From Trichoplax adhaerens (Eukaryota; Animalia; Placozoa): a stretch of 64,000 nucleotides of DNA. This document shows, piece after piece, positions 8,329-59,969 of the stretch. The stretch spans positions 4,222,449-4,286,448 of the forward strand of contig NW_002060949.1 of NCBI RefSeq assembly GCF_000150275.1, read 5' to 3'. Numbering within the stretch: the stretch's first letter is position 1; every line of letters starts with the position of its first letter. The position numbers and the translations under genes are program-made. The notes below the pieces were generated by a model, which saw nothing but the letters and a program-made list of their open reading frames with translations, did not search any database and was not told the DNA's origin.

Positions 8329-8913
8329 ATGGGAAAGCAAAATAGTAAATTGAAGCCGGAAATTTTGGAAGATTTACGTCAACATACTGAATTTACCGAA
8401 CATGAACTACAAGAATGGTATAAAGGATTTCTAAAGGACTGTCCAAGTGGCACTTTGACAGTAGAAGAATTTAAAAAGATCTATGGCAACTTTTTCCCAT
8501 ATGGTGATGCATCCAAGTTTGCCGAACACGTCTTCCGTACTTTCGATACTAATAGTGATAATAGTATAGACTTTCGCGAATTTATCATCGCTCTGTCGGT
8601 GACTTCGCGTGGTAAATTAGAAGAGAAATTAAAATGGGCGTTTAGCATGTATGACCTAGATGGCAATGGCTACATCTCTCGACAAGAGATGTTGGAAATT
8701 GTCCGAGCAATTTATAAAATGGTTGGTAACGTTATGAAAATGCCTGAGGACGAGAGTACACCAGAAAAACGTACAGATAAAATTTTTAGGCAAATGGATA
8801 AAAATTCTGATGGTAAGCTATCTCTTGCTGAATTTATAGAGGGCGCCAAAAGCGATCCGTCTATCGTTCGATTATTACAATGCGACCCTAGTGGCGTCGG
8901 ACAAGTTATGTAA
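8329..8913 (+). CDS. Neuronal calcium sensor, neurocalcin-delta/hippocalcin-like (single coding exon, 194 aa)
   Basis: MGKQNSKL myristoylation start, [18 protein letters not shown]-hand loops [24 protein letters not shown] and [12 protein letters not shown], and the end [15 protein letters not shown]. All are hallmark VILIP/neurocalcin sequences. Confidence 0.96.
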
Positions 8914-18134: not shown

Positions 18135-21100
18135 ATGTTTAAGGCCAAAAAAGCGAAAGCCAAAAAGAAAGCAAAAGCGATTAAAACCCCCACTGCCGAT
18201 ATTGATGACTTTATTCCAACAGAGCAACAAGAGATGCTTTATCAACAACAATCTAACATCGGTTATGACGAAAACATAGAAGACTACCAACAATCACAAA
18301 TGAGTTTTGATGATCCCAACTTCAATTACGCTCAAGATGAAGATGACTATTTGCAGGAACAAGAACAACAGAATTTCGTCGAATCCAATATTATGCAAAT
18401 GGAGAATATTCGTAAATTAAGTATTGATGATGGTTCCGATTTCGGCGATGATGCCACCGAATGGAGCGATGATGACAGCACAGAATTCAATCTCATTGAA
18501 ACTCTTAAAGTGTTGGAAGATTTAAATGGCAAAAATGCACTTCAGTTAACTCAAATACAAAATAAAAGGGTAAGAAATGGTTTAATATTATAATTTTGAA
18601 GGTATTACGGTGTAGTAAGCAATTAGAATGGATAACTGAATAACTAACAAATAGCTAAATTGTATAAAAATTTTATCAATTCTAGAAGACCTGTAACTAT
18701 CTTATAGTAATCACCCATTTTATAAAATTAATATATACAACAGGATGATATTGCCTTTGAAATCAGCCACAAAAGAAACATGATACTAGATGGATATGAA
18801 AAGTTAACTGATATAGCCCTTGCATCTATCTTAGAACACTCAAATAGTGCCCTTCATGTTCACAAACTTAGTGCCATAGGATGTGTACATTTGACTGATG
18901 CATGTGCACTTTTAATTGCAAAGTATTGTCGAAATCTTAAAATTATAAACTTAGATGGCTGCAAAAACCTGACATCTAAAGCTTTGGATGTACTTATATC
19001 TCAATGTGAAAAATTAAACGATGTATCAATGAAAAATTGCAATTTAAAACGCTTACCACATCAATTAGTTCAAAAACTAAGAGCATGGGAAGTTAAAGCA
19101 AAGCGGCAAATCCAAAAAAAATCAAGATACCCGAGCAAAAAAAGTCATGTCAGATCTTTATCGCCATTAACTGAACAGACAGACGACTCTGACCAGCCAA
19201 AATTAAATTTAAATGGTAACCCAATGGCAGAATGTCATGAAGACGTTTTCAAAGCTGACGATGCTTTATCCATAATAAGATATTTAACTAGAGTTGAGAA
19301 GTCCTTGACTTATCACTACAGGTTAGAACTAGAATAGCAATTATCATTTTGTACAAGTTTTTAGTACCATAATGGAGAAGTAAATAAAAATAACACATAG
19401 ATGTCAATTTTACTGCATCTTGCTATTAGTTACTAAGTAGAATTGAGTGTAACTGTAGCTTTTCTAATGTATTAATCTTGCACGTTAGGATTAATGTTTT
19501 TGGATCCGAAGATTCCCATAAAAATTTTGTCATTAGTAAACTGTTGAATCTTAAAAATGTACCCAATGCTAATGAATTTACCGTTCACGATTGGCAACTA
19601 AAAGATAATAAACAGCGAAAGATTGTAACAACTGTAGTCAATTTCGGACTTGAGGTAACTTATACATTGTTTGTAGAAAGTACTTGAAAGGATGATCTAC
19701 TATCAAATTTTATTGTGCTTCTACACGTACAAATTTAGTACCATTACTAAGAATATGAAATTGAATATTTTTCAGCAACACAACCATATTTTTGTCACCG
19801 AAGGTGCGATCAATGTCATCGTAATCAATGTTGACAAGCCTTCGTTTCTGAAATGGATTCAATTAGTGGAAACTAAGGTAACAATAAATTAACAGTTATG
19901 TTAGCTAATGAAAAATTACATTATCAATACTACGCTAAATGATATCATCGAAAATTTAATTGATTTAGATTTGTATATATATATGCGTAAACCCATCTAT
20001 AGGGTGTAATAGATATTGACGCTATCGAATTGATATCATATTAATGTGAATATCCATTTCTCAATAATGTAAAGAAAAATTTTATATTATTTCTTCAGTG
20101 CATGTCACTCTAGAACGAATCAATAAAATTATCTTATAATTTTAATAGATAAAACATTTTTTTTTAGTATCCAAGCAGCTGCTTTATTATTGTCCTCACA
20201 TATGCAAGATCATCTAGAACTGCGGAAGAAAGGATGAATATAATTAAAGATAAATTACAAGATCAAAAAGATTTATTTATACAAAGACTAGAAGCACTAG
20301 TCAATAATTCTATGTCTGAGTAAGTCACGATTATTTCCCATATAAATCAGTTCATATTCGTATTACAGAGATTTAATAGACAGCGCTATCAAAACAAATA
20401 AAAGTTTAGGATTCAAAAATAATTTAGGAAAAATTTATAACGTGAACTTTTAGCACAAAGGAGATAATAAAAAATATAAACAAAACAAAAATTAAACTCT
20501 TAAACATCAGGATTTCGATAGGCTTTTCATAATTTTTTGTCTAATTACTGCATTACAGCTGTGCTTTCTTCTTTCTCAATAATGATTACTCCAAGTACTG
20601 CATTTACACAATTAATCAATGTTAAAAAATAAACAATTACGGTACAATTCTTATAATTTATCTTATAAAGTATTGAAAATTTCATGCAAAATGATGTAAT
20701 TGAGCAAATTACATAAGTAAAATATGAATTTATTATGTTCATTTAAAATTTTACGAGAAAATTTTTACCGAATCTGTAACAGATTTGCTAATAATAACGA
20801 CTTATATATAATTATAAATACTAGTAATATGGTAGTATTTATTAAAAACAGATATAAATGTTTGCCTTTCTTATGTTGTTGCCTTCCACCATTTTTTAAA
20901 GAGGAGATCAGTGGGACCAAGAGACATGTAAGACCTTTTTTCAACAGCAAAAAATCTCTACAGTTAACCATTTGCTTTGGTATGGCATGCCTCAAATTCA
21001 TAATTACGTCATGGTTGATAGCAATAATGGAAAGGTAATCAGATTATGTTATTAAGATGACATCATAGATAACTTCAATAAAAATTAATGATCTAAATAT

Positions 21101-24100
21101 TACCGCATCACCTAAAAATCATAATAATTAATTGCTTATTGGCTTTAGCTAACAATCAAGTATTATTATTGTTTCCTAACCTAATTAAAAATTATCCTTG
21201 ATCGTGCTATTTCTTGTCATAGTAAATATTTCTATAAATTTAAATAAACTAGTATAAATAGAACTATGATTACAATAAATAAGATCGCTAAGCTAACCGA
21301 TAGGATAAAAATTTACGATGTACTAATTCTTTTAAGTAATTTCTAAATTATATTTCTGGAACTTTCTGACGTGTAATTAGGGAATTGAGGGTGTCAGACA
21401 AGAAATAATTCAGTGCATTAATGCAATTTTCCAGCGAAAAGACTGCGATCTGAATATAAATGGAGTAGCTAAACATCTATACTGGTCAAGGTTTCGTGAC
21501 GAATATAGCAAGTTTAAATATCAAGCCAAAAAAAATCACAATAATAACAAGCATATCTACTTTTTAAATGATCTCATATCTGATTTACGCGAGGATGTAC
21601 ATAAGAGAATGGATAAATTTCTATTTGCCTGTGAGATGCTTCATAATTCAGTAAGCAATATAATGATCTTGCCTCTTTTTTCTAATTTCATTCATTGTGT
21701 GTGCCGTCTATTATAGTACTTTTTGATATTCATAATATAGGGAGAGCTCTTTATGACAAAATATAACGACCAATGGTATTTTATACCGGATTTAACATGG
21801 TTATATGAGAGACTAACTGAAATAGGGCAAGGAATAGTGCCCAATGTTGCTATTCCCGAAGGAGTAATGCCACTCACTTTATATTATATAATTAAAATTA
21901 ATTTCTCAATACCTTATTTAGAAATTAAGACATAAATAGGAATGAAACAATTTTTTCATTTAATTTCATATCGATTTCTAATCAAATATCTCTGTAGGAT
22001 CAAATCATTATTAATCTAGCAAAAAATGCTGGAATATCAGCTGTAATGTCAAACGTTATCAATTTAACTCGCTCATTAACTGATCTGACATGTTTACCAA
22101 ACAGTCCTGCCAAACCGTTGGTAACTATACGTTAAAATTTTTTGTGTATAATTTGGCTACTAATATTACCCAAAATAGTAAAGCAGTTAATATTCGATAC
22201 TTTTACAATCTGTACCTAACATATTATCTAAATACAGTGCTCAATATATTACTTTTCTGAATAATTTTAGACATTGTTGTGGGAAGATTATCACCCTAAT
22301 GAATATTTTTATGAACAAACTTATGAAATAATCAGTTACAGTCCTGCATCGTTGTCGGTTTTAAAGCAAATTCAATCTAATCTCATTCGGCTAACACAAA
22401 ACGTTCACCATTTATGGAATGATGGATTGTTATTCAGTTTGGGCTACGTAGAATGTCTACTATTACTCATTGAATCTGAATCAACTCCAACAGATGACGG
22501 CTTAGTCAGCTTAAAAATTTCAGCGAGATGTAATGCAATACCTGATGCGGATGCAGCAGAGGAAATACAAAGTGGACTACGTCAGACGTTTATTATGTGT
22601 TGCTACATCATTGAAGCAGCTTTTGAGCCTTTGCCAGGTATCGCAACTAAGGTTAGCAAAATTTAGCAGATATACCAATACATCACTTATTCTCAGATTT
22701 TTATCGATAAGATTTTTCTATTAAAAATTATTAAATTTGGATAGACAACGTTAAAATCTAATGTAGCCAAAGAAAATGACATTGAGGGACAATTAAATCG
22801 GCCTAAATTTGATGAAGGTAATAATTTAGGCACTAACTCTTAAGCTTTAGATCAATATAATTCGCTTTTCTAAAATCTAATAGGTGCATTTGGGTAATTA
22901 ATATCTTAATAGTTTACTGTTTAATGAAACAGTCTACGCTCTATCTGTGACAAATGTTGTAGGAATTGATGAAAAGCTTTATATGGTTTGCTTAAATATC
23001 ATAAATCGTTAATATCAATCGTTGAATCTTTCTTGTTATTTCATTCTAAACATAAAGTTGATATTCCTGCAATATGTGGTCACGAACTGGAAAAATCAGC
23101 TTCAGAGATAGTCTGCGTGCAATGTCAACCATATTCATCCGAAAATAACCAGCAAAATATTAACAAATATCAAAAAGAGAAGATGTAAATCTAATCGCTT
23201 TTCTCGTTAGATATGATATATAGAAACCTAATTTTGTATATCTTTGTAAATATTAGATGAGTTAATCAGTATCTTATTTTAAATACGCGTAGATAATCAA
23301 TTAAAACCAAATCGTGATTATGTATAATCATAAGTTCCCTTTTTTTCGATTGATCGATAGATCATCTTGTACTAATTGCGGTCGATGCAATTATTGTATA
23401 CAGTTTATGTCGGTAAGACAGCATAATATTAAGACTTTAAAAGTACACGTATATGATAAAGTAGGTCTGATTTATTAGAGGATAGCATTCTTTATATTTC
23501 AAAATCGAGGGAAAATTATCTCTAATTGGTTCATCCGTGAATAAACTAATACAGATTTTCATGTAAATAGGATGTACGTAAAGAAAGTGCTACTCCTGCA
23601 TTTGTTAATGACTGGTCCAGAGCTTTTAATTTTCAACAAATTGGAAATATCTTAAAACATCCGTCTGATAAGGAGATTATTGATGAAAGACAGGTTGTTG
23701 TATCTGATCTCAATTATAGTATTGCCGTTAACAAATATCCCTTGAATTTTGTAACTGGCCGGATTTTTCAGTTTACTATCTTGGATATCGCCAATGTTGA
23801 TTTTATCTTAGGATTAGTTACATCATCCTATGATAAAACATCCCGCCCTGGTTTAACAGATTCATCTTATAGCATCGTGTTTACAGAATCCGCTTTCTAT
23901 GCTAATAACCAAAATATGGGAAGTTTGGCTTTTGATATTGATCATCTTTGTCCCGGTGACCAACTCAGCATTATTGGTAGATATTCAGCTGATAAAAAGG
24001 TAAGGCAACGAGTTTGCTTCTAATTCTAATCTTAAAAGCTGGGTTGAATATAGTCTAGTACACTGTACAATATCATAGTCACCTGATTTGATATTGGTGA

Positions 24101-27100
24101 TGACGGTCAATATTTTGAAAATGTAAATTTAATCGATTCTAAGAATCCGGTTTCTAAACCAACTGCAATTGCAATAGTTGTATTTTCGAACAAAATTAAT
24201 GAAGTAGCGCTCAGATTAGTTTCCAAAAGTCAAACAATACAACATACACCTTTAGTTCAATCATTTCTTTAACCATTAATAGTATCTTATTTTTATTTAC
24301 ACTGTATGATCATAGAAGGAAATTGTATTTAGCAGAAATGGATTAGTACTGCTTGTCGTCAATGAACCTGACAATAAAGATTATTATCCGATAATCCATT
24401 GCGTTGATACCACCGCAGATGATAGCCGCATTATCCTACAATTTGAAGGCAATACAATTCCGGTAAGCTATATCTCATTAATTCATTATATTCTATTTAA
24501 AGCCGAAAATGATTAAGCAATTACCCTGTATAATTTTCGTATATTGTCAAATCATATATTGACTATTTAAGAATTTAGTAATTAATACAGTATACTCGAA
24601 ACATGGTGCCTGAGTTACATATTTAGTAGAACTTTTAGCTTCTCTACTAAATTAAGATTTAAAAGGGATTATTTGAATATAGTAATAATGATAATATTTA
24701 GGTTCTGGTAGTTATTCAGAAAGACGGGAATAAAATCACCATTACTTAACTTTCTAAAGCTCTTTGATAAATACATATTAATATTTTTTGCTATAGATAA
24801 CTCAAGGAGCAAAATTTGTCACTTGGGAGAAAGGCATGAGACTAGAGGCTAAAGATCGCTTGAATCCCAGCTTGATGTGTGTTGCGACGGTCGATGATGT
24901 CAATGATAATGAACTTTTAATCCATTTTGATGGTTGGACCAGAAAATATGATTACACTTGCAAGAGCACTTCAACAGATATTCATCCAATTGGTTGGTGT
25001 GAGAATAATTATCATCGGCAATTGGAACCCCCCAAAGGTACCTAAATATTTACGTTAACATCTACGATGACATACGTATTGCAATCTCGGCTAGTTCTAA
25101 TGAATTTAACCTATAATTTCTATGAATTATTTCTAAAAATTGCTTTAAAATCCAATAATTAGGTGACAATAAGCCTGACTTTAAATGGGCTCAATATCTA
25201 GAAAGTATTCAAGCTGTCGCTGCCCCTGTAGAGCTTTTTACACCAGTAAGATATATGTCTGCAAATCGTAAAAATTATTTTATGTTATTATGTGCTGACA
25301 TTAAATAATATTTTATTAAACCATAAATTAATAAAATAATACATACGGGTTAACGGGTATGCTTAAGTATCTTTACTTTTACTGAATAATAGGTTCAATC
25401 CTGGTCATAAGAGTTTAAAACCAACATTTATACATAGAGAATATGTACTTGAGATGTTTTTAATAAGCGATTTCACTCATCAGTAATATAAAAATAATAC
25501 TTCTTATGGATTACATGATAACATTTCTGATTCTTTAATCAGGAACAACTTGGCGAAAAAGATCCCGCGAAGATTTCTTTTTATGCCAGTACTCTTCAAA
25601 GCTGTACTAAACTCCAAGGAGATTTTGGAGGTAATTATAACAAATACACAAATATATTGTACAGTCCAATTGAAGATCTAAGAACGTCAGTTGCATACTT
25701 TCTAGAGAAGTACTAATCTATGCAATGAACAGATAAAAGAAAATGAAAGTATATTGTATAAGTTAGATTACATTTATAGTATTATATTAGGACAGTTGGC
25801 GGTTTAAATATATTTACAATACATGGGCAGCTGCTAGGACGTTATTGTAATTTATACATTGATTTCACGCCTATTTAGGAATAAAAGTGACTCAATCTCA
25901 TCAACACTCTAATTTTTTTAAATAATCTTGGTTAAAGTATCACGTGTACATCGTTTAATGAATGAAAAAACTGAAAATTCCATAAAAATATTCCTTGATA
26001 CCATTACCCGTGATACAGCATGTCCATTCATGCTCTACTTTCCGAAGTTAGACTCTTTTGAGGATCTAAATCTATTGAGCTGGAGATTTTGGCGAAACAA
26101 TTATAAAAAATATATTAGTCTACTATGTACTGGTTCAGGCAAGTATTTTCGCTCTCATATAAAACCCATAAGTCGTAAATTTGCAATTCTCACTTACAAC
26201 CAGTTAATTTGTCTTTATTGCTTCCTTCTGTTACTATTGCATAGGATGCTTTGATGCAAAGGAAATCGATATACATGGTTTTGAAGAGACTGGCCATCCA
26301 ATTGCAGGAGCTGACTGCTATTCGCAATGGAGCCAACAATCCATTGTCATTATATGGTTAATTAGCCATATTATTTTAGATTTAATTAAATTACAGGTAT
26401 CAAAATATAAATTAAACTGTAATTTACTTCCTCAATTAAATTATTTAACTATAATTACAAGCTTTCATTTACTTAAAATCTATGATATTAAAATCCTGTT
26501 AGTTGATAGCAAACTTAATGTAAATTATTTACTATATTGCGTTTTCTTGTATAAAGAACGTCTATAAAATATCTAGTAAAGCGCTCAGATTATTTGGTTT
26601 ACAAGAGGATAAAATCGAAGATGACAAAGTACGTACGGAAGAATCTAGTATGATATTTGCAATTGCACAATAGTTATTTTATTGCATATATCTAAGCTAT
26701 GGATACAGCTTTTACTCGATCGGAGAGTAAAAGGTAAAGTATTTGATTACGATCATCTAATATTTTCTACATATTTCTCCTGTTCCTATATTATAGTTTG
26801 TAAAGCAGGCAGAAGTAATTTTGAATATGATAACGACAATGTTGGATGTACCTGCACTCAAGATTTGTCAACGTCTGGATCGAAATTCGATAATGAAAGC
26901 TATTCCTGTATGTATAATGTCTCGAAATATAAGATTTAATAATTTATGGAATCATTCAATCAAAATAATTATTAACTTGAATTGCTGACGGATTAATACA
27001 AAGACAATTAATACTTTATTTTCTCAACGATTACGTACGAAATTATGGTATCCTATTCTTTCATCTTATACTAGCCCTAATCATCACAAACCACTTTGAT

Positions 27101-30100
27101 CAGTTTTCATTTCTCTAGTAATCAAAATTAATTATATTGACTGTAGGAGATAGAAAAGCTAACAGCTGAGGCGATAGAAAAGTGTGCTACCTGCAATGCT
27201 GTAGAAATTAAAGATAGATATGCTTCCAATAAGATTCATTATATTTGTCCAGCCCATACTTTGGCTATTGCTGGAAATGATCAAAATTTGGAAGAATTCC
27301 CTTCGGATACAATATTGTCACTGAATAAATTATGCAATATGAAAATGTATAATAATAAAATCGCCGAAATACCAGAGCAGGTCTTTCAGCAATTCTCGAC
27401 AACCTTAACTAATATTAATTTCAGTGGTAATAAATTAAAGGAACTGCCACTGGGAATGAAATGTCTAAAGAATATTCAACAGATATTTATAGGGTATAAC
27501 GAAATTACCAATATTCCAGAAGGGTTGCTTAGCGCTTTTTCTGATAGCCTGATATCTCTCGACTTATCCTCAAATTTCATTCGTCGATTACCGGATGATA
27601 TCGGAACATTAACCAACTTAAAAATGCTTAATTTAGCTTACAACCCCATTGATCAGTTAAGCAATAATATTGGCCAATTGAAATCATTGGAGGCTTTAAA
27701 TCTTACTGGTCACACTTTAACTTACTTGCCTGATACATTTTCCTCCTTGCAAAATTTGTCAAAACTGTCTCTTAATGGAGTGCCATGGATTCAAGTAACA
27801 TCGCAAGATTATTTGCATAATAAAATAATTACTAAAGAGACTATTGTAGATCTGTTGATGCATCCATCAGAACACGTAAAGGTTAATGCTTACACGAAAG
27901 AGGTAGGATATTTTCGGTTAACGAAAATTCGAGACGTAGATTAGGTCTAATTATAATTCTTTTTAAGATTAATTTTTAGTTATACACTAAACTGTTTGTT
28001 GTATTATTTAGCAAATTGAAAGTTTATTCGATGAATGTGATACCAATGCCAACGGTATCTTGGATACACAAGAAATGATTAATCTAAATGCAAAGTTATA
28101 TCTTAGCTTTCCTCGATTACAAGGCAGGAAAGAAAATGAAGAAAATGAAGGGAGTTTTCTGAAGAATCTTCAAAACTTTACGAAGTTAAAAGAGTTACAC
28201 CTGACGCACTTAGCGCTCTCCACCATCTCAGAAGAAGCTATAAGCAATTTAACCAGTTTAATCAATCTTAATTTATCTGATAATCCTAAACTAACTTCAT
28301 TGCCTGGTGTTATATCCATGTTACCGCTAAAAGAATTATCGTTACGGGGAACACACAGTCTAAAGACACCGCCACCAGAAATCAAAAATCGTGGGTTTCA
28401 AGCCATTATGGGATATCTAAAACGTTTACTGACTGGCTCCGTTGAGTGTAAAAGAACAAAGTTAATGATGGTTGGCTTAGGAGGCGCTGGAAAGACAAGG
28501 TTAGCAGGCAATGATTATTAATTAAAGAGTATCAAATGTCCTTTAGTATCTTTTAGAGTAGTTATTAAAAATTGACATCAATTTATTGCCATCAACCAAT
28601 TTTTGAAGATGGCTTGGGCTATTATGTATAACTTATTGCTGAAATTTAGTTTAACTGTAATTGATCATCGGTTTAATGATGAAATTTTTTACGCTACTTT
28701 AAGCTTGGTAGAAGCTTTGTTATCACCATATGGCCAAATATATGAGTCTGAAGCAGAAAGAGAAATCACAGATGGAATTGATATTGATACTTGGACAGTT
28801 AAAACTGATGAAGGCAGAATTGAATACAGTATATGGGACTTTGCTGGTCAAACATTGTACTACAACACTCACCAGGTAAAATTGATATCTTTGCCTACTT
28901 TATGTCCTAAGATTTAAGTTTTAATTCTGTAAATTTATCAAAACTTTCGCTAGAATAAAAATTAAGTACTTAAACTATTATTAACACCCGAAGTATCCAC
29001 ATTTCTCGTGTAGTTTTTCCTTTCCGATCGTGCTGTCTATTTCTTGGTATGGAATACGCGCTTAGGTCATGAACATGCTGGTTTAGATTTCTGGCTAAGT
29101 TCGATAGCTTGTCACGCTCCTAAAGCACCAGTTTTTGTCATTGGAACTCATTGCGATATGGTAGATTGCTTATAAGCTTAACATGATTTCATATCGTGTT
29201 GAATTGATTTTATTGGTCTTTTTCTGAGAGTCAAAATAAATTACAGTTATACATAAGCTTTGTTCCTCGTCATTGAGGAGTTATAAATAGGCGTAATTTC
29301 TATTAGATTTAAAGATCAGTTAACCTTGCCGTAGTGAAATATTTCCCTAAATGATCCTGTAATTAAGATTAATTATATCTTATCCCGCAGGTTTCTGTCA
29401 CTGAATTACCTGAAGAGGTCATGAAAAATCGATATCAGCAAATTGTAGGATTTCATTACGTTAGCTCATTTGTTGGCACGGTAAAGAACACGATTTTGCT
29501 TTCCTTTGAATGCAACTTGCAATCAGAAATCAATCTAATTTCCCATCAAATGATACTTAAGACCTGTTTATAAATGAATCTCTAGGGCATACCCAAATTG
29601 AAAGATTGTTTAATAAAAGAAACGCTACAACAAAAGTATATGGGAGAAAAAATTCCTCAAGTTTGGCTAAATTTAGAGAAAGCAATATTAGAGTATGTAA
29701 ATTAAATTATATGCTAGTAATTGTTTTACTTTTTGGCTACCTTTTATCTTTTATTATGAGATACTAGATAGCTTTAACATAAAGTTATGTTTACTGTTCA
29801 TTATCAAAGCTGGATAGCTTTATTAATTAATATTATACAAATATATAATACCTTTATAATTGTATTATTACGGCTGTCTATAGTTTTATAATTATAGAGC
29901 ATTTATGCCAAAATAGTAATTTTCAAATATATGAAAATTGGACTGGTTCCATAATACTATACAGTTATACGCGTATTCTAGATTAATTTACCTAATCACT
30001 ATCGCTTAGGTAATTACTATCTTCCTTAGTTTAGGCTTGAATAATCTTAACTAATCCTAATTATGCTTGAAATTAGGAAAGGAAATACAGTCAAAGTGCT

Positions 30101-33100
30101 TACCTGGAATGAAGTTACTGAAATTGCCAGTTCAATAGGAATATTTGACAATACGGAGGTATTTTATTCCCATAAATAAACCCTTCCACATTTTATTTAT
30201 ATAAAATAATTATGATATTATTCTCATTATTACATCATGTCTACCGTAATAAAGCTAGCAAATAAGGTATCTAATTCGCCTTAAAAATATATCTGGTTTT
30301 GCATCTTTATGATTGATAGTTAAGACAGGCTATCGGATTTCTCCATGATCTTGGCTCTGTACAACATTTTAATAATATAGCGCTAAGAGATAGAGTTGTC
30401 ATCGATCCACAGTGGATTGTTGATGCAATGGCTTGTGTAGTCTCAGTTCACGAAACACCTATTAAGGTAATTGGTATATACTTATACTATACAGTTACAG
30501 ATGCCATAAATTATTAAGTAAGCAGGATATATTATCATAATATCAGCCTGCTGTAAAAGAAACTATAACTAAATCTCCTCACCAATATGATTTTTATTGG
30601 TCCACAGGAAGGAAAGTTTAAACATTCCGACATGGCCAAAATATGGAAACAGTATGATAAACAGCATCACCAATGGTTATTGAAATTGACAGAACAATTT
30701 GATTTAAGTTATGCTTTACCCAAACAAGATGTTAATCTTGTTCCATGCTTGTTACCAGGAACTGAACCTAAGGTATAAAGATCTTTCTATTCTTACCATT
30801 AAATTATATCTTGCTTATCCAAGAATATCTCAAGTAACATCGTCTATTTCAGTTTGATTGGATTGAAGACATTGATAATAGTAATATCAAAGCGACGAAG
30901 ATGAAATACATATTCGAATATTTACCAGCAGGACTTTTTAATCGTGTACAGGTCAAGATATTAACGAAAATGTAATATAATTTTGATAAATATTCGTTTC
31001 TAAAATCATCCTCTACAATTATATTCTGCAGGTCAGGCTATGTAAATTTACTGACAATCAAGTTATATGGAAAACTGGATCTTTATTAGTGAAGAATGAA
31101 AACAAGGCCGTAATGAAGCAGTTACGGTAAAAAATGGAGTTGATATTTTAGTTATCTAAGTCCTTAAAATAAAAATTTTCTTAATTGTATTCAAACGAAA
31201 CGTCATAATTGAAACTTATGACCGAGTAACTAAGTACTCGTATATGATGCATTCGGCTGTACAATATTTTATTCAGAATTACTGTATATATTTAATTTCA
31301 TGATGTATGCAGTTGTAAAGTTATGTATATCGTATATTTTTAGGAATACCGATAACCTATTGATAGAAGTTCGCGGTATATCACCTAATAATCTTCTCTT
31401 CCTGATACATGAAATCTTGGAATCGCTAATAGCAGAAGCTTTTCATGGTATCTCATATGAATATGAGGTGCCATGTATAGATTGCTTGAATCAGGTACCA
31501 GATAAAGACTTTAAATTGTTTTAAATAGAGTGTGTTATAAATATATGTATTGTGTCTCTGTTGAAAAAATTGACATAAAATTGTTATGGGGTCATCGCTT
31601 AGGGTTCACGAGATCCTTCCATGTTCAGATCAACAAGAATACGACGAGCTTCCGAACTAAAAGCTGCGTTTTTGCAATGCGAACACAACTTTCATAGTGT
31701 ATCAATACATGAACTGCAATGTAAGTACAAATCTAATATTAAATTACTTGCAATTTATGATCATCTTATGCTATAATATCAGTAGCGATTTAGCTGCTGT
31801 ATTAGTCTACAATAATAATTTTAACATAGTACGACATAAAATTGATTACGACATCTTAGTGATATTTATAGCAATTACATTACAATTATTTTCCTTCTGA
31901 TCTGCCTAGCTGTTATTCCACCGGAATCCCCAAATGAATTTGACTTACATTTAAGGAATTCAATGCGAACTTTGACGAATCTTTCCGCTAGTTACGAATT
32001 AGATGCTTATATAAGTACTTTAGATAGTGATACTGGTGTACCAGCAAGGATTTACAATGATTTATGTTCAAAAGGATATTCTTGGTCAGTAGGATTTCCG
32101 TGGAATTACTATCGCCTATAGGAATATTTATGCTAAAGGCATCTTCGCAAGAAAATATGTATATTAAATTTCCGGATATGTTTCTTATCTTTTTTTCACA
32201 GTTATCGAAAGCAATCTGAAAGCGGCAGTCAAGATGCAGATTTTTTGGCTATTAAACAGTCTAATGTACGTGTTAATGATTCATTTTAAGATCAGTTACA
32301 ATATTCTGGAAATATAAATAATTGGCAAGAGTAACTTTACAAATCCCTATGAGACGTAAATTCCAGTAAACAATGCTTATTAATTATCATATAATAAATT
32401 AGTATAAATAGAAAAACTGATACGTTGGAAAACTTTAATTAACTACGTTACTAATACTCCTACTAATGACTCTGCTCAACCAAAGATTGTCATAATCTGT
32501 ATGACGGATGAATACATTAAAGATGAAAAATGTCGCTTGGAATTGAGCCACATCACAGCATTCTTGCGGAAACCTATTGCACTCGTTATTATCAATAATA
32601 GCTGGGAATGGAAAACAGATAGTATAGGCATGTTGATGGCTGACGAAGTAAGTTATAATTTGAAATTGATCTTACTTATCGAGCTTTCTGATCGTGTTTT
32701 CACTTTTTGATATCATTTTCCTTATTTATAAATTCTCTGACTATAAAATTAAAGGTATACATCGACATGTCAGACCTTGATAAGTATGATATCAAATTTG
32801 ATGAACTTGATAATCGAATTAAATTACACGACAAACGTAATCGCCAGGTAGACCAATAACTGCCGCAGTGTTCATTAGCATACCGTATCATTCTCTTTGA
32901 TGATCATATTTATAGTAAAAGCCATCGATGTTAATGCCAAAGTTAAATTATTTACATTAAATAGAGTTTATTACTATTGGTACAATTAGGTGAACTATGG
33001 TGATTGTTTCATTAGTTATTCATGGTCAAATTCAGAGCTAGCGTGCAAATTAGGGACGGTTCCATTACCTGGAGCTATTGGAAGAGGTTATAAATCTTTC

Positions 33101-36100
33101 TCTATATCTATTTTTTTATTGAACTCACAGCCACTGGTATTGCCTTAAATAAGATCTTAGTTAGTTATCCTTACACTGTATATTAAATCCTTATACATTC
33201 TTTTGTGTTTGATATCAATTCTTTATTATAGGAGATCCAAGGCAGTTAAAGGAACAGATTGAAGAAAGGGGCATTTCATGTTGGATTGATGTTAATAATG
33301 TCGGGAAGGTATATTAACCTGTGGATGGAGTAATGCTATAGCTAATGGTATTATGCAAGAATAAAAATTGCGATAAAAGCCCCCAATATCTTTTTTGCTA
33401 GACCGGTCTATTCGAAGATATTGCTGCTGGATTACAACAAGCCAAGGTTATGGTAGCCTGCGTTTCAGATGAAGTTAGTACTTCGTCATTGCTTACTTCA
33501 AATACAGCTAATTAATTTCAACTTATATTGCTATTATTGTAACTGTTGAGGTACTGATTGAGGGGATGTTAAAAGGCTTACAATTTTTAATTATTACCAT
33601 TGACTACTGATAGATAGAATTGAATAGCTATGTACAATAAAGGCGTAGTGTTCAGTAAGGACTACTTCCAATTCCTCAAAATACCCTGTTAAGATCAATA
33701 GTAATCTAGCATGATACTACAGTAAACTTATGATAGTCTTACAGAATGTTTAAGAATTGCATACTTACTTTGTTTTATTGCGTTTACTCTTGAAATATAG
33801 TATGTAAAATCCAGAAATTGTCTCATGGAATTCCGCTTTGCTCTAAATAGTTTAAAATTACCAGTTATTTTAGCAGTTGTTGGCACCGGTTACCAATGGT
33901 TGTCGACAGAGGTAAAAAAAAATGGCAGAATACCCTGTTAAAGGAACTACCAGAATATTAGATATAAAATTGCTATGATATTCAGTAACATTTTATGCCA
34001 GCAAGTATTCTTGAAATATCCTAGATTATCTAAGATTTTACATTTTCGAGGAATTAAAAAATTCTTTCACTTTTTTTCACTTTAGGTCGGAATGCTTAGT
34101 ATAAGCTTGCCAAAGGTATTTTACTTCTTGATTGTTTATATACTTATGCTGTAAATACATTACTTAAATTGGGGCTATCTAATTTAACTTTTGGTATTTC
34201 TCAATTTTTAGATTAATTTACAGGATGATGCAAGCGAGGATAAAGTCAATCAAATAACCAAATACATACAAGAAGAAATTAGAATATCTGATAAATCTAA
34301 AGATACCGCGGAAGCAAATACTACAGAAGATACGCTAGAAATGAAGCATTTACAATTTCTGGTATGGATGAATAAAAAATAATATGAACAGTACCAAATT
34401 AAGTTAATAGCCAATATTCTCTTAGGTGAAATCAATCTTACTATAACCATTTCAGTCGAGTCATGTAATATGTATCACAACATTTTTTATTCTATCCATA
34501 ACCTATAGGAACTCTTGGAACTGGCTCAAAGAAATCTTTTAAGGCAGATAACCAATATCGCTGATAGTATTTTATCTACTCCAAAACCTCGATTATTAAT
34601 TCTTGATTGGAAAGTGGAAGAAACGACTTTAAGTCAGGAAGAGCAAGAAGGACTAAAGGTTTCAATAAAATTAGAATATCATAAAGCATTAAAATTATTT
34701 TATTTCACTAGGAAACGAATAATTCCTACAATTAGTTAATTACAATAATATTTGCTATTTGTGATCTCATCTTTTAGGATCCTGATTTGGGATTTTACGT
34801 AGACAACAAAGTATTTTTTGTCAAATTTTTGTGTGAGCATGAGGAGGTTAGATGATAATAAATATTTTTGGTTAGGTGTTTACTAGATACTGCTGGTAAT
34901 GACTTGTAAAAAGCAAATAGACAAACACATGTGTTCAAATTGAAAATTCTAAAAATGCGATGTTAATATAATTTAGGGATGGCATTTGCCAGCAGGAAAT
35001 TTCGAATATTTCAGTTTTGGAAATATTACCGATGTGAAAGAAGCAGCAAAAGCTATTTCTGGTTATATCGCGCGTGTTATGTCATTGATACAACATAAGG
35101 AGTTGGAAATTAAAAGTGTTGCTGGCATCGAGGGAGAGGCTTTTATTGATTTCCTTGTAAAGGTGCCGTATGGATTACTGTACTGTGATTGAACTGATTT
35201 AGCAGCTTTGAGTAGACGTGAGATAGAGTATTGTGTTTTCAACATTATATTGATTTGATTTGTACGAGTGAATTTATTACTATCTTCGAATGAATCTCGG
35301 TTTATAAGTTTAGATTCTTTCAATACTACAGCTAAAGTTAAATAGATTCTATGCTTGTATATTATAACATACTGATATGCAAAGCGGAATTAAAATGTTG
35401 GGTATTTAATTGATAATAGCAATTTAATATTCATATAAGCGTATATACGTTTACTAACAGTGAACTCATAATTTTATAAATACATATATATATATTTGCT
35501 ATTTGATAGCTTGCTGAATCATCTGATGCTGGTATAATGGAATCATATCAAGAGTTATCGGAATTTCTAAATGAGATTAGCTGGCCAGTTGCTAATAGTG
35601 GACTTTTGAGGTACTCAGAGATGATACATAATGTACTTGATAGTTACCGTTTTTGTGTCTAGGAAATGGTTAGAGGGTACTACCAACGTATTTTTTTTTC
35701 ATAGAAGGAGTAGCATTATTACGATGAAAATTTTATTGCTCTTATTTGTGTTACTGTAGAGTATATAATATTATACTCTCCTTTATATTTATATCCAAAG
35801 CTATATAAAATTATTTTCAATAGGTGTCAATTACCGAACGGGAAGGTATCATGGCTTTGCCGAGAGCATTTACAGAGTACAGGAGCGACGGTCATGGATG
35901 ATTCTAGTGCCTATATTATTGCAGATCCAGGTCTTGGCTCATTGCCTTTGGAAATTCATGAATCGTCCGAAATTGAAACACGAAGGGATAGCAACGATGA
36001 TAAGCGAGTGTATGAAGAAGATGATGATATCAGTAGCGTCGATAAACAAGAGAACGAAGAAGGTTCTCACTCTGTCGATGAGGCGGTTAACGATTCAGCG

Positions 36101-36637
36101 AAAGAAATAACCACAGTTAGTCCTTTTGAAAATAGTAATGAAAAGAGAGATAGTGAACCTTTAGTGACCCAGGAAGAATATATCAAGGGGCAGCAAAATG
36201 AAGTAGAAAAATCAACTGTGGCGAAAGAAGATGATGATGTATCACCGGCAATGGATACTGCATTCGGTGATGATAATCAACCATCACAAGAGAATATGAG
36301 AAATCGCGAGGATGCATCACCACAGACTGAGAAAGATGAAATTGATAATTCATCGCCAGTAGAGGAGAAAGGCGAAAATGATCATTCATCGCCAATAGAG
36401 AAGAAAGATAAAATTGATAATTCGTCGCCAGTAGAGAAGAAAGATGGAAGTGATGATTCTATCTCAACCGGCAAGAAAAAATCGCTACCTGAAAACTTAC
36501 CCGAAGAATTAATTCAATCTACGGGAAAGCTCAGCCTCAATGATGCGCCCACAACTCCTAGTCCACCATTGAATCCTCCTGCTCCGTCTAATCCGACTAG
36601 AACAAGAAACGTTTCTAGGACTTGTATATTACTGTAA
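18135..36637 (+). CDS. Giant tandem ROCO protein: LRR-ROC(dead)-COR-Cys-rich-SPRY-MBT-CTD / LRR-EF-hand-LRR-ROC-COR-TIR-TIR-CTD-acidic tail-CaaX
   Basis: About 50 exons splice in frame from MFKAKKAKAKKK (18135) to RTCILL* (36637). The intact ROC has G1 GLGGAGKTS, G2 ITDGIDI, G3 WDFAGQ, THQFFLSDRAVY and G4 GTHCD; COR has FLHDLGSV..VIDPQW and LPAGLFNRVQVRL. The exon at 27147-27901 joins the end of cassette 1 to the LRRs of cassette 2 with no stop. Confidence 0.8.
18744..19321 (+). other. ROCO cassette 1: cysteine-containing (FBXL/AMN1-type) LRRs plus LRR-ROC linker
   Basis: LSAIGCVHLTDACALLIAKYCRNLKIINLDGCKNLTSKALDVLISQCEKLNDVSMKNCNLKRLP; linker LNLNGNPMAECHEDVFKADDALSIIRYL. Confidence 0.8.
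19489..22650 (+). other. ROCO cassette 1: degenerate ROC plus COR
   Basis: Colinear similarity to the intact ROC-COR of the same gene: RINVFGSEDSHKNF, TTVVNFG, HNHIFVTEGAINVIVIN, YPSSCFIIVLTYAR, GIEGVRQEII, MLHNSGELF..YFIPDLTWL, HHLWNDGLLF. Confidence 0.7.
23571..24461 (+). other. SPRY-like domain in ROCO cassette 1
   Basis: FQFTILD..FILGLVT..RPGLTDSSYSI..PGDQLSIIG..EIVFSRNG..YYPII matches the SPRY pattern (xPGW..SYGY / GDxIG / xFTKNG / LYPxV). Confidence 0.7.
24797..25245 (+). other. MBT (malignant brain tumour) repeat in ROCO cassette 1
   Basis: WEKGMRLEAKDRLNPSLMCVATVDDVNDNELLIHFDGWTRKYDYTCKSTSTDIHPIGWC..LEPPKG..FKWAQYLE..AVAAPVELF. Confidence 0.93.
27261..28440 (+). other. ROCO cassette 2: typical LRRs with an inserted EF-hand
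   Basis: LxxLxLxxNxLxxLP repeats; canonical 12-residue loop DTNANGILDTQE at 28039-28074; linker LKTPPPEIKNRGFQAIMGYLKRL. Confidence 0.9.
28450..31730 (+). other. ROCO cassette 2: intact ROC GTPase plus COR
   Basis: KLMMVGLGGAGKT|S, WDFAGQ, GTHCD, VSSFVGT|GIPKL, YMGEKIPQVWL, COR-A/B motifs, and the Cys/His cluster PCIDC..QCEHNFH. Confidence 0.95.
31995..34280 (+). other. Two tandem TIR (TIR_2/SARM-bacterial-like) domains
   Basis: TIR1: DAYIS..IVIICMTDEYIKDEKCRLEL..KPIALV..YIDM. TIR2: DCFISYSWSN..GISCWID..GLFEDIAAGLQQAKVMVACVSDEYVKSRNCLMEF..LPVILAVV. Confidence 0.85.
36329..36455 (+). repeat. Coding minisatellite, 36-bp (12-aa) unit, about 3.5 copies
   Basis: EKDEIDNSSPV-EEKGENDHSSPI-EKKDKIDNSSPV-EKKDGSDDS in the last ROCO exon. 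Confidence 0.85.
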
Positions 36638-59096: not shown

Positions 59097-59969
59097 ATGG
59101 ATAGCTTACATATAAGTCATCCAAATCGCAAAGTTCAATTCAACACGGATATCAATGTTAAGCCAATACCGTCTCGAAATTTATCGGTTAAAAGGCATTA
59201 CTATCAAAATTATAGCCTTTCTAACATGACAACGACGATAAAACACAACAGCAGCCACTTTCATGAATCGGGTTTGTATAAATTATCAAGTCAAAAGGAT
59301 AGAGATCAAGAACAACGTGAAATAATTGATCATAATTATGATGATCGTTATAGTAAGCTCTATTCCATACCAATTAATTTTAAGTGGCAAATTATACCAG
59401 ATCCTAATCTCAGAAATCAATGTATTCATAGCAACAATCATGATGGCAACAACTCCTCATCGATATCGGTCCTTAGTGATCAAGTGAAACGAAATCAAAA
59501 AGCCTACTTAAATGGTCGAAAAAATAGGCAAGCTGTTCCTAAAGAATTAGTTAGCTTATGCAATGAACACATCCGACGAAAAAGCATGATGATTAAAGTT
59601 AGTGATCCTCCTAGTCTAAGTCGGTCTTTATCACGCAGTCGTAGTATTGATGTGAATAAAAAACCATCGCAAACTTCTACCAAGCCATTATCACGCCATC
59701 CAATTAAAGTAAATAGTCTACCAGTAATTCTCCCACCTGCTATCAAGATTGATTACGCTGCCGATGATACTAACGATAATCATCATCATCAACAACAGCC
59801 ACAACCACCACCACAATCGTCATCATCATCAGCATCACATCACTTTACTCGACGTCATCAAAAATCGTTTAAACCATTTCGACCAAGAACAACGTCAGAA
59901 TTGAATATTTTAACACAATTTAAATCAACTGCTCCGGTCAAATACTCTTGGTATTATAAACCATGTTGA
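59097..59969 (+). CDS. Uncharacterised basic, S/H/N/P-rich, probably disordered protein (290 aa, single exon)
   Basis: An 873-nt open frame in very AT-rich DNA is unlikely by chance. No family recognised. Confidence 0.6.
   Translation: MDSLHISHPNRKVQFNTDINVKPIPSRNLSVKRHYYQNYSLSNMTTTIKHNSSHFHESGLYKLSSQKDRDQEQREIIDHNYDDRYSKLYSIPINFKWQIIPDPNLRNQCIHSNNHDGNNSSSISVLSDQVKRNQKAYLNGRKNRQAVPKELVSLCNEHIRRKSMMIKVSDPPSLSRSLSRSRSIDVNKKPSQTSTKPLSRHPIKVNSLPVILPPAIKIDYAADDTNDNHHHQQQPQPPPQSSSSSASHHFTRRHQKSFKPFRPRTTSELNILTQFKSTAPVKYSWYYKPC

Follow-up and report, generated by a model that had tools for sequence, protein, structure and literature searches.

Known ROCO proteins contain one Roc-COR unit per chain and dimerise through COR, and work on the Roco protein of C. 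tepidum and on LRRK2 has coupled the Roco GTPase cycle to the COR dimer. Here, we report a computational analysis of a gene of Trichoplax adhaerens (Placozoa) that is predicted from its sequence to be a conserved, single, tandem ROCO gene, whose product combines a first module of the pseudo-GTPase type with an MBT repeat and an output formed by two TIR domains. The gene lies on the plus strand at positions 18135-36637 of a stretch of 64,000 nucleotides (contig NW_002060949.1, positions 4,222,449 to 4,286,448), which is referred to throughout as the window; positions below are those of the window, and features are on its plus strand, unless another contig or locus is named.

The closest described proteins come from placozoans and from a mollusc. 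According to PMC6321704 (Kamm, Schierwater, DeSalle 2019), only two placozoan TIR proteins contain leucine-rich repeats (LRRs); both are about 3000 amino acids (aa) long, have several further domains but no transmembrane domain, and are placed in family ecTIR-DC 14 II (Gerdol et al. 2017), and the authors call functional prediction for these proteins speculative. The immunome of Aplysia californica (PMC9334734) includes LRR-ROC-COR-TIR proteins, labelled TLR-like there, one of which has an Mbt domain (LOC101848126) and one an EF-hand (LOC101845043). Judged by their published domains, the Aplysia proteins have the same visible domain set as the window gene, which has both an MBT repeat and an EF-hand loop. 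From the fit in size, the LRR and TIR content, the lack of a transmembrane domain and the presence of two genes, we infer that the window gene and its paralog are the two TIR proteins with LRRs described in PMC6321704.

Together, the Aplysia and placozoan reports indicate that the visible combination of domains is known and old in animals. The first-pass annotation of the window had proposed an undescribed system, a label that does not hold for proteins of a kind already reported as ecTIR-DC 14 II in placozoans (PMC6321704) and as LRR-ROC-COR-TIR with Mbt or EF-hand in a mollusc (PMC9334734). What appears to be new is the tandem ROCO arrangement with a pseudo-GTPase, a novelty in the domain map and not in the gene. 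We found no mention of a hidden first Roc-COR module in the text of PMC6321704, and a phrase search of limited literature for a tandem Roc-COR in one chain yielded no description, its matches referring only to the two Roc domains of a dimer.

The window sequence here is AT-rich, with about 31-32% G+C, and the introns are short. A splice-graph search found a GT-AG, frame-consistent exon path from the ATG at 18135 to the stop at 36635-36637, with 2,404 codons in a strict model and 2,971 codons in a loose one. The small exons of both models are uncertain and the loose model is rich in implausible micro-exons; the parts described here are restricted to exons with homology backing. Every sequence landmark quoted in the first-pass annotation was located, in place, in open stretches of the plus strand. 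We consider it probable that the locus is one gene of about 3,000 codons encoding a giant cytosolic protein of the invertebrate TIR-containing ROCO family, in which a diverged half with LRRs, a Roc-derived domain, COR-B and MBT is followed by an LRR-Roc-COR-TIR-TIR half.

The two ROCO-type modules

The C-terminal half (half 2) is, judging by its motifs and profile matches, a canonical LRR/EF-hand/Roc/COR-A/COR-B protein followed by two TIR domains. Every search and fold was run on single exons, which gives less power for the Roc, COR-A, TIR and C-terminal regions. A ROCO alignment and hidden Markov model (HMM) were derived from 22 LRR-Roc-COR proteins returned by the LRR search of a representative library with the exon at the junction of the two halves; multi-LRR proteins are dominant among the best 150 library matches for this exon, and the gene's own product is absent from these 150. 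The HMM matches all half-2 exons collinearly.

Half 2 begins in the junction exon itself (27147..27902), where one open frame runs from the last part of half 1 (NKIHYICPAH) through a conserved linker into the LRRs that open half 2 (Pfam LRR_8 E 5.8e-19). The next part (28012..28499) consists of the EF-hand loop DTNANGILDTQE (EF-hand_6 E 0.008), more LRRs (LRR_8 E 3.2e-7), the segment LSLRGTH...IMGYL and the P-loop GLGGAGKT (ROCO HMM E 6.6e-9). It is followed by the Roc GTPase at 28650..29480, supported in two exons by Pfam Roc (E 5.9e-5 and 1.7e-4) and the ROCO HMM (E 2.3e-10 and 4.7e-14). Direct reading finds the G1 (GLGGAGKT), G3 (DFAGQ) and G4 (THCD) motifs all intact. COR-A at 29586..30772 (Pfam E 2.6e-10 and 6.5e-12) and COR-B, with a Cys/His-rich end, at 30853..31720 (Pfam E 1.9e-8; 32.1 bits in the genome search; ROCO HMM match) both exceed their curated cut-offs when the genome is searched in six frames.

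The EF-hand loop, at 28012-28090, fits the 12-residue consensus and is flanked by blocks of half-2 LRRs; in a paralog on the same contig, it is kept as DEDGNHVLDYLE. No exon gave a Pfam match to NACHT or NB-ARC, the best NACHT value (E 0.12) being obtained only for the P-loop exon of the paralog, so the gene product is not an NLR.

The two TIR domains are located at 31909..32847 and 32990..33917, respectively. Each TIR exon, aligned with its paralog counterpart, was compared by hhalign with an alignment of the genome's own Pfam-positive TIR_2 domains, using 40 column shuffles. TIR domain 1 matched TIR columns 13-45 (P 0.0012) and 72-122 (P 4.8e-6), with 0/40 shuffles in each case, and gave a Pfam TIR_2 match with E 0.015. 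The four exons of TIR domain 2 matched columns 21-35, 34-55, 59-78 and 81-95 (P 0.001, 6.7e-7, 8.1e-5 and 0.0016, respectively; 0/40 shuffles). Fisher-combined P values are 1e-7 for the first domain and 8e-13 for the second. Because the exon matches are collinear and none was equalled by shuffles, the two TIR domains are taken to be real. Three of the four weak PDB profile matches of TIR domain 2 are the TIR domains of TLR10 and TLR2; a Pfam TIR search of the whole genome does not list the TIRs of the window gene. Both domains contain a C-x-x-E motif (CRLEL and CLMEF), whose Glu, a candidate for the residue used by NAD+-cleaving TIRs, aligns with the Glu of TLR10 WCHYEF in a weak PDB alignment.

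The N-terminal half (half 1) is an old, strongly diverged second module that consists of LRRs, a Roc-derived domain, a COR-B fold, Cys-rich stretches, one MBT repeat and a C-terminal region without a known family. Its LRR block (18744..19321), which ends in LNLNGNP...IIRYL, is homologous to the first LRR exon of the paralog (tblastn E 4.7e-10), with LRR_1 (E 0.88) as the only Pfam match. The degenerate Roc region (19490..20319) comprises the exons 19490-19654, 19776-19877 and 20168-20319, all of which give ROCO profile matches. Alignments of window and paralog exons served as half-1 profiles and were compared by hhalign with the ROCO alignment: the P-loop exon falls on ROCO columns 54-82 (P 5.5e-6, 0/60 shuffles), the mid-Roc exon on columns 119-153 (P 0.011, 1/60), the G4 exon on columns 154-204 (P 0.011, 0/60) and the COR-B exon on columns 392-473 (P 0.0095, 0/60). 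The four matches follow the genomic order, two of them abut, and their Fisher-combined P is 2e-8. At the aligned positions, the nucleotide-binding motifs are lost, with GSEDSHKN for G1, NFGLE for G3 and LTYAR for G4. These comparisons, together with the structural model described below, identify half 1 as a predicted Roc-derived pseudo-GTPase with COR-B. The pairing of a dead-GTPase half with an active-type half, proposed in the first-pass annotation, agrees with this distribution of lost and intact motifs.

The half-1 COR-B region extends over 21998..22651. Its main exon, 22271-22651 (127 residues), was folded by AlphaFold2 with ortholog and paralog sequences as the alignment, giving a predicted local distance difference test (pLDDT) score of 78. 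Compared with 48,161 PDB representative chains, the model is best matched by the COR of C. tepidum Roco (3dpu_B; Z 11.7, root-mean-square deviation 2.0 A, 98 aligned residues), followed by 3dpt (Z 11.3) and by LRRK2 residues 1679-1810 (Z 9.4), and LRRK1 also matches, with Z 9.4 in a second-look list. The first unrelated chain in this comparison has Z 9.2, about 2 Z units below Roco COR. Foldseek with the same model gave no match at E <= 0.001, and it was structural re-alignment and the wide search that settled the match; a PDB profile search with the exon as query gave none. Look-alikes of this exon in the ESM Atlas, importin-like helical fragments with low recognition, were disregarded.

Between the degenerate Roc and COR-B, at the position expected for COR-A (21381..21863), lie two conserved exons, 21381-21650 and 21741-21863, which are 62% and 45% identical to their counterparts in a contig of another species (L012) and contain an LHxxG...P..WL-like motif. 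Farther downstream, the MBT repeat (24797..25245; core 24797-25037 and the next exon, 25163-25245) is recognised by Pfam PF02820 with E 6.3e-28 and 97.2 bits (cut-off 22). The earlier placement of MBT in half 1 (97 bits) and of TIR-TIR in half 2 (collinear exon profile matches) is thus retained.

Paralog, conservation and alternative readings

The paralog was located with exon 22271-22651 and with the COR-A and COR-B genome searches at about 1,555,600-1,578,500 of the same contig (loci L007-L011), 2.7 Mb from the window gene. By tblastn, the order of parts is the same at both genes; identity is 45-80% for most half-2 exons, 26-37% for a few of them and 27-34% for the three half-1 exons that can be aligned. 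The two copies differ in the motifs of the first module: in the G1 region, the paralog has INVIGNRGVGKS, with an intact GNRGVGKS, versus INVFGSEDSHKN (GSEDSHKN) in the window, and in the G4 region it has ILVGTHAEE, of the THxD type typical of Roc, versus FIIVLTYARS. One of several P-loop families that Pfam detects in the P-loop exon of the paralog is Roc, with E 0.01 over profile positions 1-57. In the first module of the paralog (L008:6209-6415 and L008:7093-7254), the P-loop and GTHAE are kept and the G3 Asp is lost. Going by these motifs, the first module of the paralog, unlike the window copy, may still bind nucleotide.

Several observations weigh against the reading of the locus as a single tandem ROCO gene. 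The identity of the window gene with a protein in PMC6321704 and the existence of a single mRNA are inferred, the latter from DNA and published sister-strain annotation, and the mechanism proposed below is conjecture throughout. The hhalign P values of half 1 come from profiles of two to three sequences over short exons. Pfam searches with single half-1 exons and the genome COR searches detected neither Roc nor COR in this half, and alpha/beta arrangements such as that of the COR-B-like fold are common, with phosphohexomutase domains reaching Z 9-10. COR-A of half 1 is not significant: hhalign gives P 0.14-0.29 even with three sequences, one match is misplaced, and Pfam and the genome search have no match there. 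Self-alignment of the halves by blastp returns noise only, both within the window gene and across the paralogs. Furthermore, in the paralog (L009:8200-8260; contig position 1568200-1568260), the codon exactly at the junction, GAT in the window, is an in-frame TAA and is followed 18 nt downstream by an ATG, and the halves may be able to exist as separate proteins.

Accordingly graded, the proposal of two complete ROCO cassettes stands for two modules of the LRR-Roc-COR type and is not supported for the completeness of the first, in which COR-A is not significant, or for the likeness of the halves, between which there is no detectable sequence similarity. The lack of pairwise similarity indicates that the halves are not recent duplicates. 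The first-pass annotation had also described swapped inserts and a conserved C-terminal domain occurring twice, which implies a duplication with this domain in common. An exon-by-exon hhalign matrix of both halves is at chance for such a domain, the sole exception being NKIHYICPAH versus NGKVSWLCREH (G-K-V-x-W-L-C-x-x-H-like; P 0.035, 2/60 shuffles), so the shared domain lacks statistical support. The LRRs are apparently of different types as well, the half-1 repeats being of the cysteine-containing type by motif inspection, versus Pfam LRR_8 in half 2, a difference that argues further against plain duplication of a cassette. Duplication with swapped inserts is therefore not supported.

One way to account for the weakness of half 1 is that the gene is single and its first half not ROCO at all: a region of unrelated origin that retains the remnant of a generic P-loop, the second 'cassette' resulting from pattern-matching of short motifs. 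This would explain why Pfam finds no Roc or COR in half 1 and why half 1 resembles half 2 in no detectable way, it would fit the failure of COR-A and of the repeated C-terminal domain in our tests, and it draws on the fact that the P-loop exon of the paralog fits many P-loop families about equally well. Against this reading, four exon profiles match the ROCO alignment in the order expected, with columns 119-153 abutting 154-204, the G4 of the paralog is of the THxD type typical of Roc, and the folded exon is best matched, across the PDB representative set, by the COR-B of Roco and LRRK2. On balance, a half 1 of non-ROCO origin is unlikely.

Another question is whether half 1, ROCO-derived as we read it, still counts for anything. 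If the gene were a decaying fusion, with half 1 a non-functional remnant on a working LRR-Roc-COR-TIR gene, the loss of all GTPase motifs in the window copy and the very weak profile similarity of half 1 would be natural outcomes. Yet contig L012 (run SRR30664517) contains five collinear half-1 exons with 35-63% identity, intact frames and no stops, and in this other species, the borders of the half-1 exons are conserved and the flanking introns do not align. The intact, conserved exons in L012 indicate that half 1 is under purifying selection. With half-1 exons 45-64% identical in another species, frames and borders kept amid unalignable introns, an MBT repeat at 97 bits, and an arrangement of half 1 plus half 2 that survived gene duplication, we regard decay as highly improbable.

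The unity of the gene was claimed in the first-pass annotation and withstands inspection of the DNA: no stop separates the halves, and the junction falls within a single open exon, 27147-27902, with the unity of the mRNA read from this DNA and from published annotation. The rival possibility is that of two genes side by side: one of reader type, with LRRs, a P-loop-derived domain and MBT, that would end at about 27.26 kb, and an LRR-Roc-COR-TIR gene that would start at an in-frame ATG at about 27.33 kb, the joint frame being an artefact of the model. The paralog of this genome, with its TAA at the junction and its ATG 18 nt downstream, speaks for such a split, and the window linker itself contains in-frame Met codons. 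Nevertheless, the window has no stop between the halves, and the junction lies inside an exon, whose ortholog (P0151/L006), on a genomic contig of placozoan-like origin from run SRR30664517, shares with it 68% of all 251 aligned residues as well as the AG and GT borders. Conservation of this exon is highest in the linker, where 24/26 residues are identical in L006. In PMC6321704, both proteins are annotated at about 3000 aa, and the junction exon of the paralog is open in two other placozoan-like sources (P0153 and P0154/L021), which argues that the fused frame is ancestral to the duplication. The TAA of the paralog may have arisen in this lineage, may be polymorphic or may reflect an error of the assembly, and the paralog may be split in this genome. 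For the window, two separate genes seem very unlikely, and a single tandem ROCO gene remains the reading that we prefer.

Other parts of the gene and genome context

The remaining parts of the gene have no assigned family. The first coding exon (18135..18569) is an open stretch in the gene model with an ATG and a Lys-rich start, followed by acidic low complexity, and matches no Pfam family. Downstream of the half-1 COR-B, direct reading identifies Cys-rich stretches (22973..23475), which are kept in L012 (E 5e-6). The ROCO profile has a Cys-rich end, with which the Cys-rich stretch that follows COR-B in the paralog aligns weakly (E 0.41), and part of what had been taken for a Cys-rich insert of half 1 may, on this resemblance, belong to COR instead. 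The next region (23571..24462), labelled SPRY in the first-pass annotation, has no established fold: the SPRY assignment found no Pfam, genome-search or PDB profile match, AlphaFold2 modelling gave a pLDDT of 36, hhalign against the genome's own SPRY alignment gave P 0.14, and a Neuralized profile search of the genome did not match this region either.

The middle region of the paralog (L009:3298-3618 and L009:5429-5851) contains an MBT repeat (Pfam E 4e-7) and also a chromo-barrel/Tudor-knot-like domain (MSL3_chromo-like E 2.2e-8, Tudor-knot E 5e-6). From these MBT and Tudor-knot/chromo matches, both paralogs carry domains of methyl-lysine-reader families, in different numbers.

The C-terminal region of half 1 (25922..27263) belongs to no known family, and one of its exons, 26800-26916, is 64% identical in L006. 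The C-terminal region of half 2 (34509..35905) likewise matches no Pfam family and is kept in the paralog (E 4e-10 and 3e-6). The gene closes with an acidic, Ser-rich, repetitive tail (35906..36637), an open stretch with no Pfam family that ends in a CaaX-like CILL and the stop. The tail contains D-N/H-S-S-P-V/I-E-x-K repeats. CaaX-like ends are present in both paralogs, CILL-stop in the window (36623-36637) and CSVM-stop at L010:8086-8451, and are preceded by basic or Ser-rich stretches. Such termini suggest prenylation and membrane anchoring of both proteins.

Elsewhere in the window, an open frame of 194 aa at 8329-8910 (+), about 9 kb upstream of the gene, encodes several EF-hands (EF-hand_7 E 4e-25) and is calmodulin-like, and one of 290 aa at 59097-59966 (+) matches no Pfam family. 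In the genome at large, COR-A-positive loci number more than 50, a large expansion, most of them single open frames of 700-800 aa. One such locus that was checked (C1372:8262-8747; L013:1752-3872) is intronless, combines Roc with COR-A and belongs to a ROCO lineage other than that of the window gene.

Possible mechanism and comparison with known systems

A mechanism can be sketched from the domain map. The dead Roc-COR would pair with the live Roc-COR, either within one chain or between chains, to form a built-in asymmetric pair. The N-terminal half would supply binding surfaces, namely LRRs and MBT, and the C-terminal half would contribute Roc as the switch, the EF-hand as a Ca2+ input and the two TIRs as the output. 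Binding of partners by the LRRs or MBT, or of Ca2+ at the EF-hand, might determine the GTP state of the active Roc, which in turn could control clustering of the tandem TIRs and their signalling as adaptors or NAD+ hydrolases; the CaaX end would probably anchor the giant protein at the membrane through a lipid. In its full form, this proposal holds that the dead and live Roc-COR units pair through COR-B, that MBT/LRR partners and Ca2+ switch the live GTPase and trigger the TIRs, and that the whole is an ancient immune or cell-death switch, found from placozoans to molluscs, in which a Ras-like GTPase takes the place of the ATPases of plant and vertebrate NLRs. We regard this chain of events as doubtful and offer it as a tentative scheme.

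The gain from the present analysis is a testable domain map for a gene that had been listed before. The coupling of dimerisation, nucleotide state and output domain in ROCO GTPases such as LRRK2 is still debated, and a single chain that combines a live Roc-COR with a dead one would constitute a natural asymmetric dimer for probing it, with the paralog, which keeps the P-loop of its first module and has a stop at the junction in this genome, as a natural contrast. In one of the simplest animals, the map also places TIR outputs under a predicted Ras-like switch, and the link of TIR to a Ca2+ loop and to a fold of methyl-lysine readers would broaden the range of TIR control.

Compared with the canonical ROCO proteins, namely C. 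tepidum Roco, LRRK2, LRRK1 and MFHAS1, half 2 shares the order LRR-Roc-COR-A-COR-B, and the model of half-1 COR-B superposes on 3dpu and on LRRK2 1679-1810; the output of the window gene is TIR and not a kinase. An inactive domain of the GTPase fold is kept beside an active one in Miro, in p190RhoGAP with its pseudo-GTPase domains and in GIMAP8, none of which, to our knowledge, is a Roc-COR tandem or contains TIR or MBT. Plant TIR-NLRs, and paired NLRs with integrated domains, share with the window gene a nucleotide switch, LRRs and a TIR output, as well as the idea of a degenerate 'sensor' joined to an active 'executor', and the sensor-executor comparison that the first-pass annotation had drawn is reasonable as an analogy. 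In contrast to the plant proteins, however, the window gene is predicted to use a Ras-like Roc GTPase instead of a STAND ATPase of the NB-ARC/NACHT type, and to unite both units in one polypeptide.

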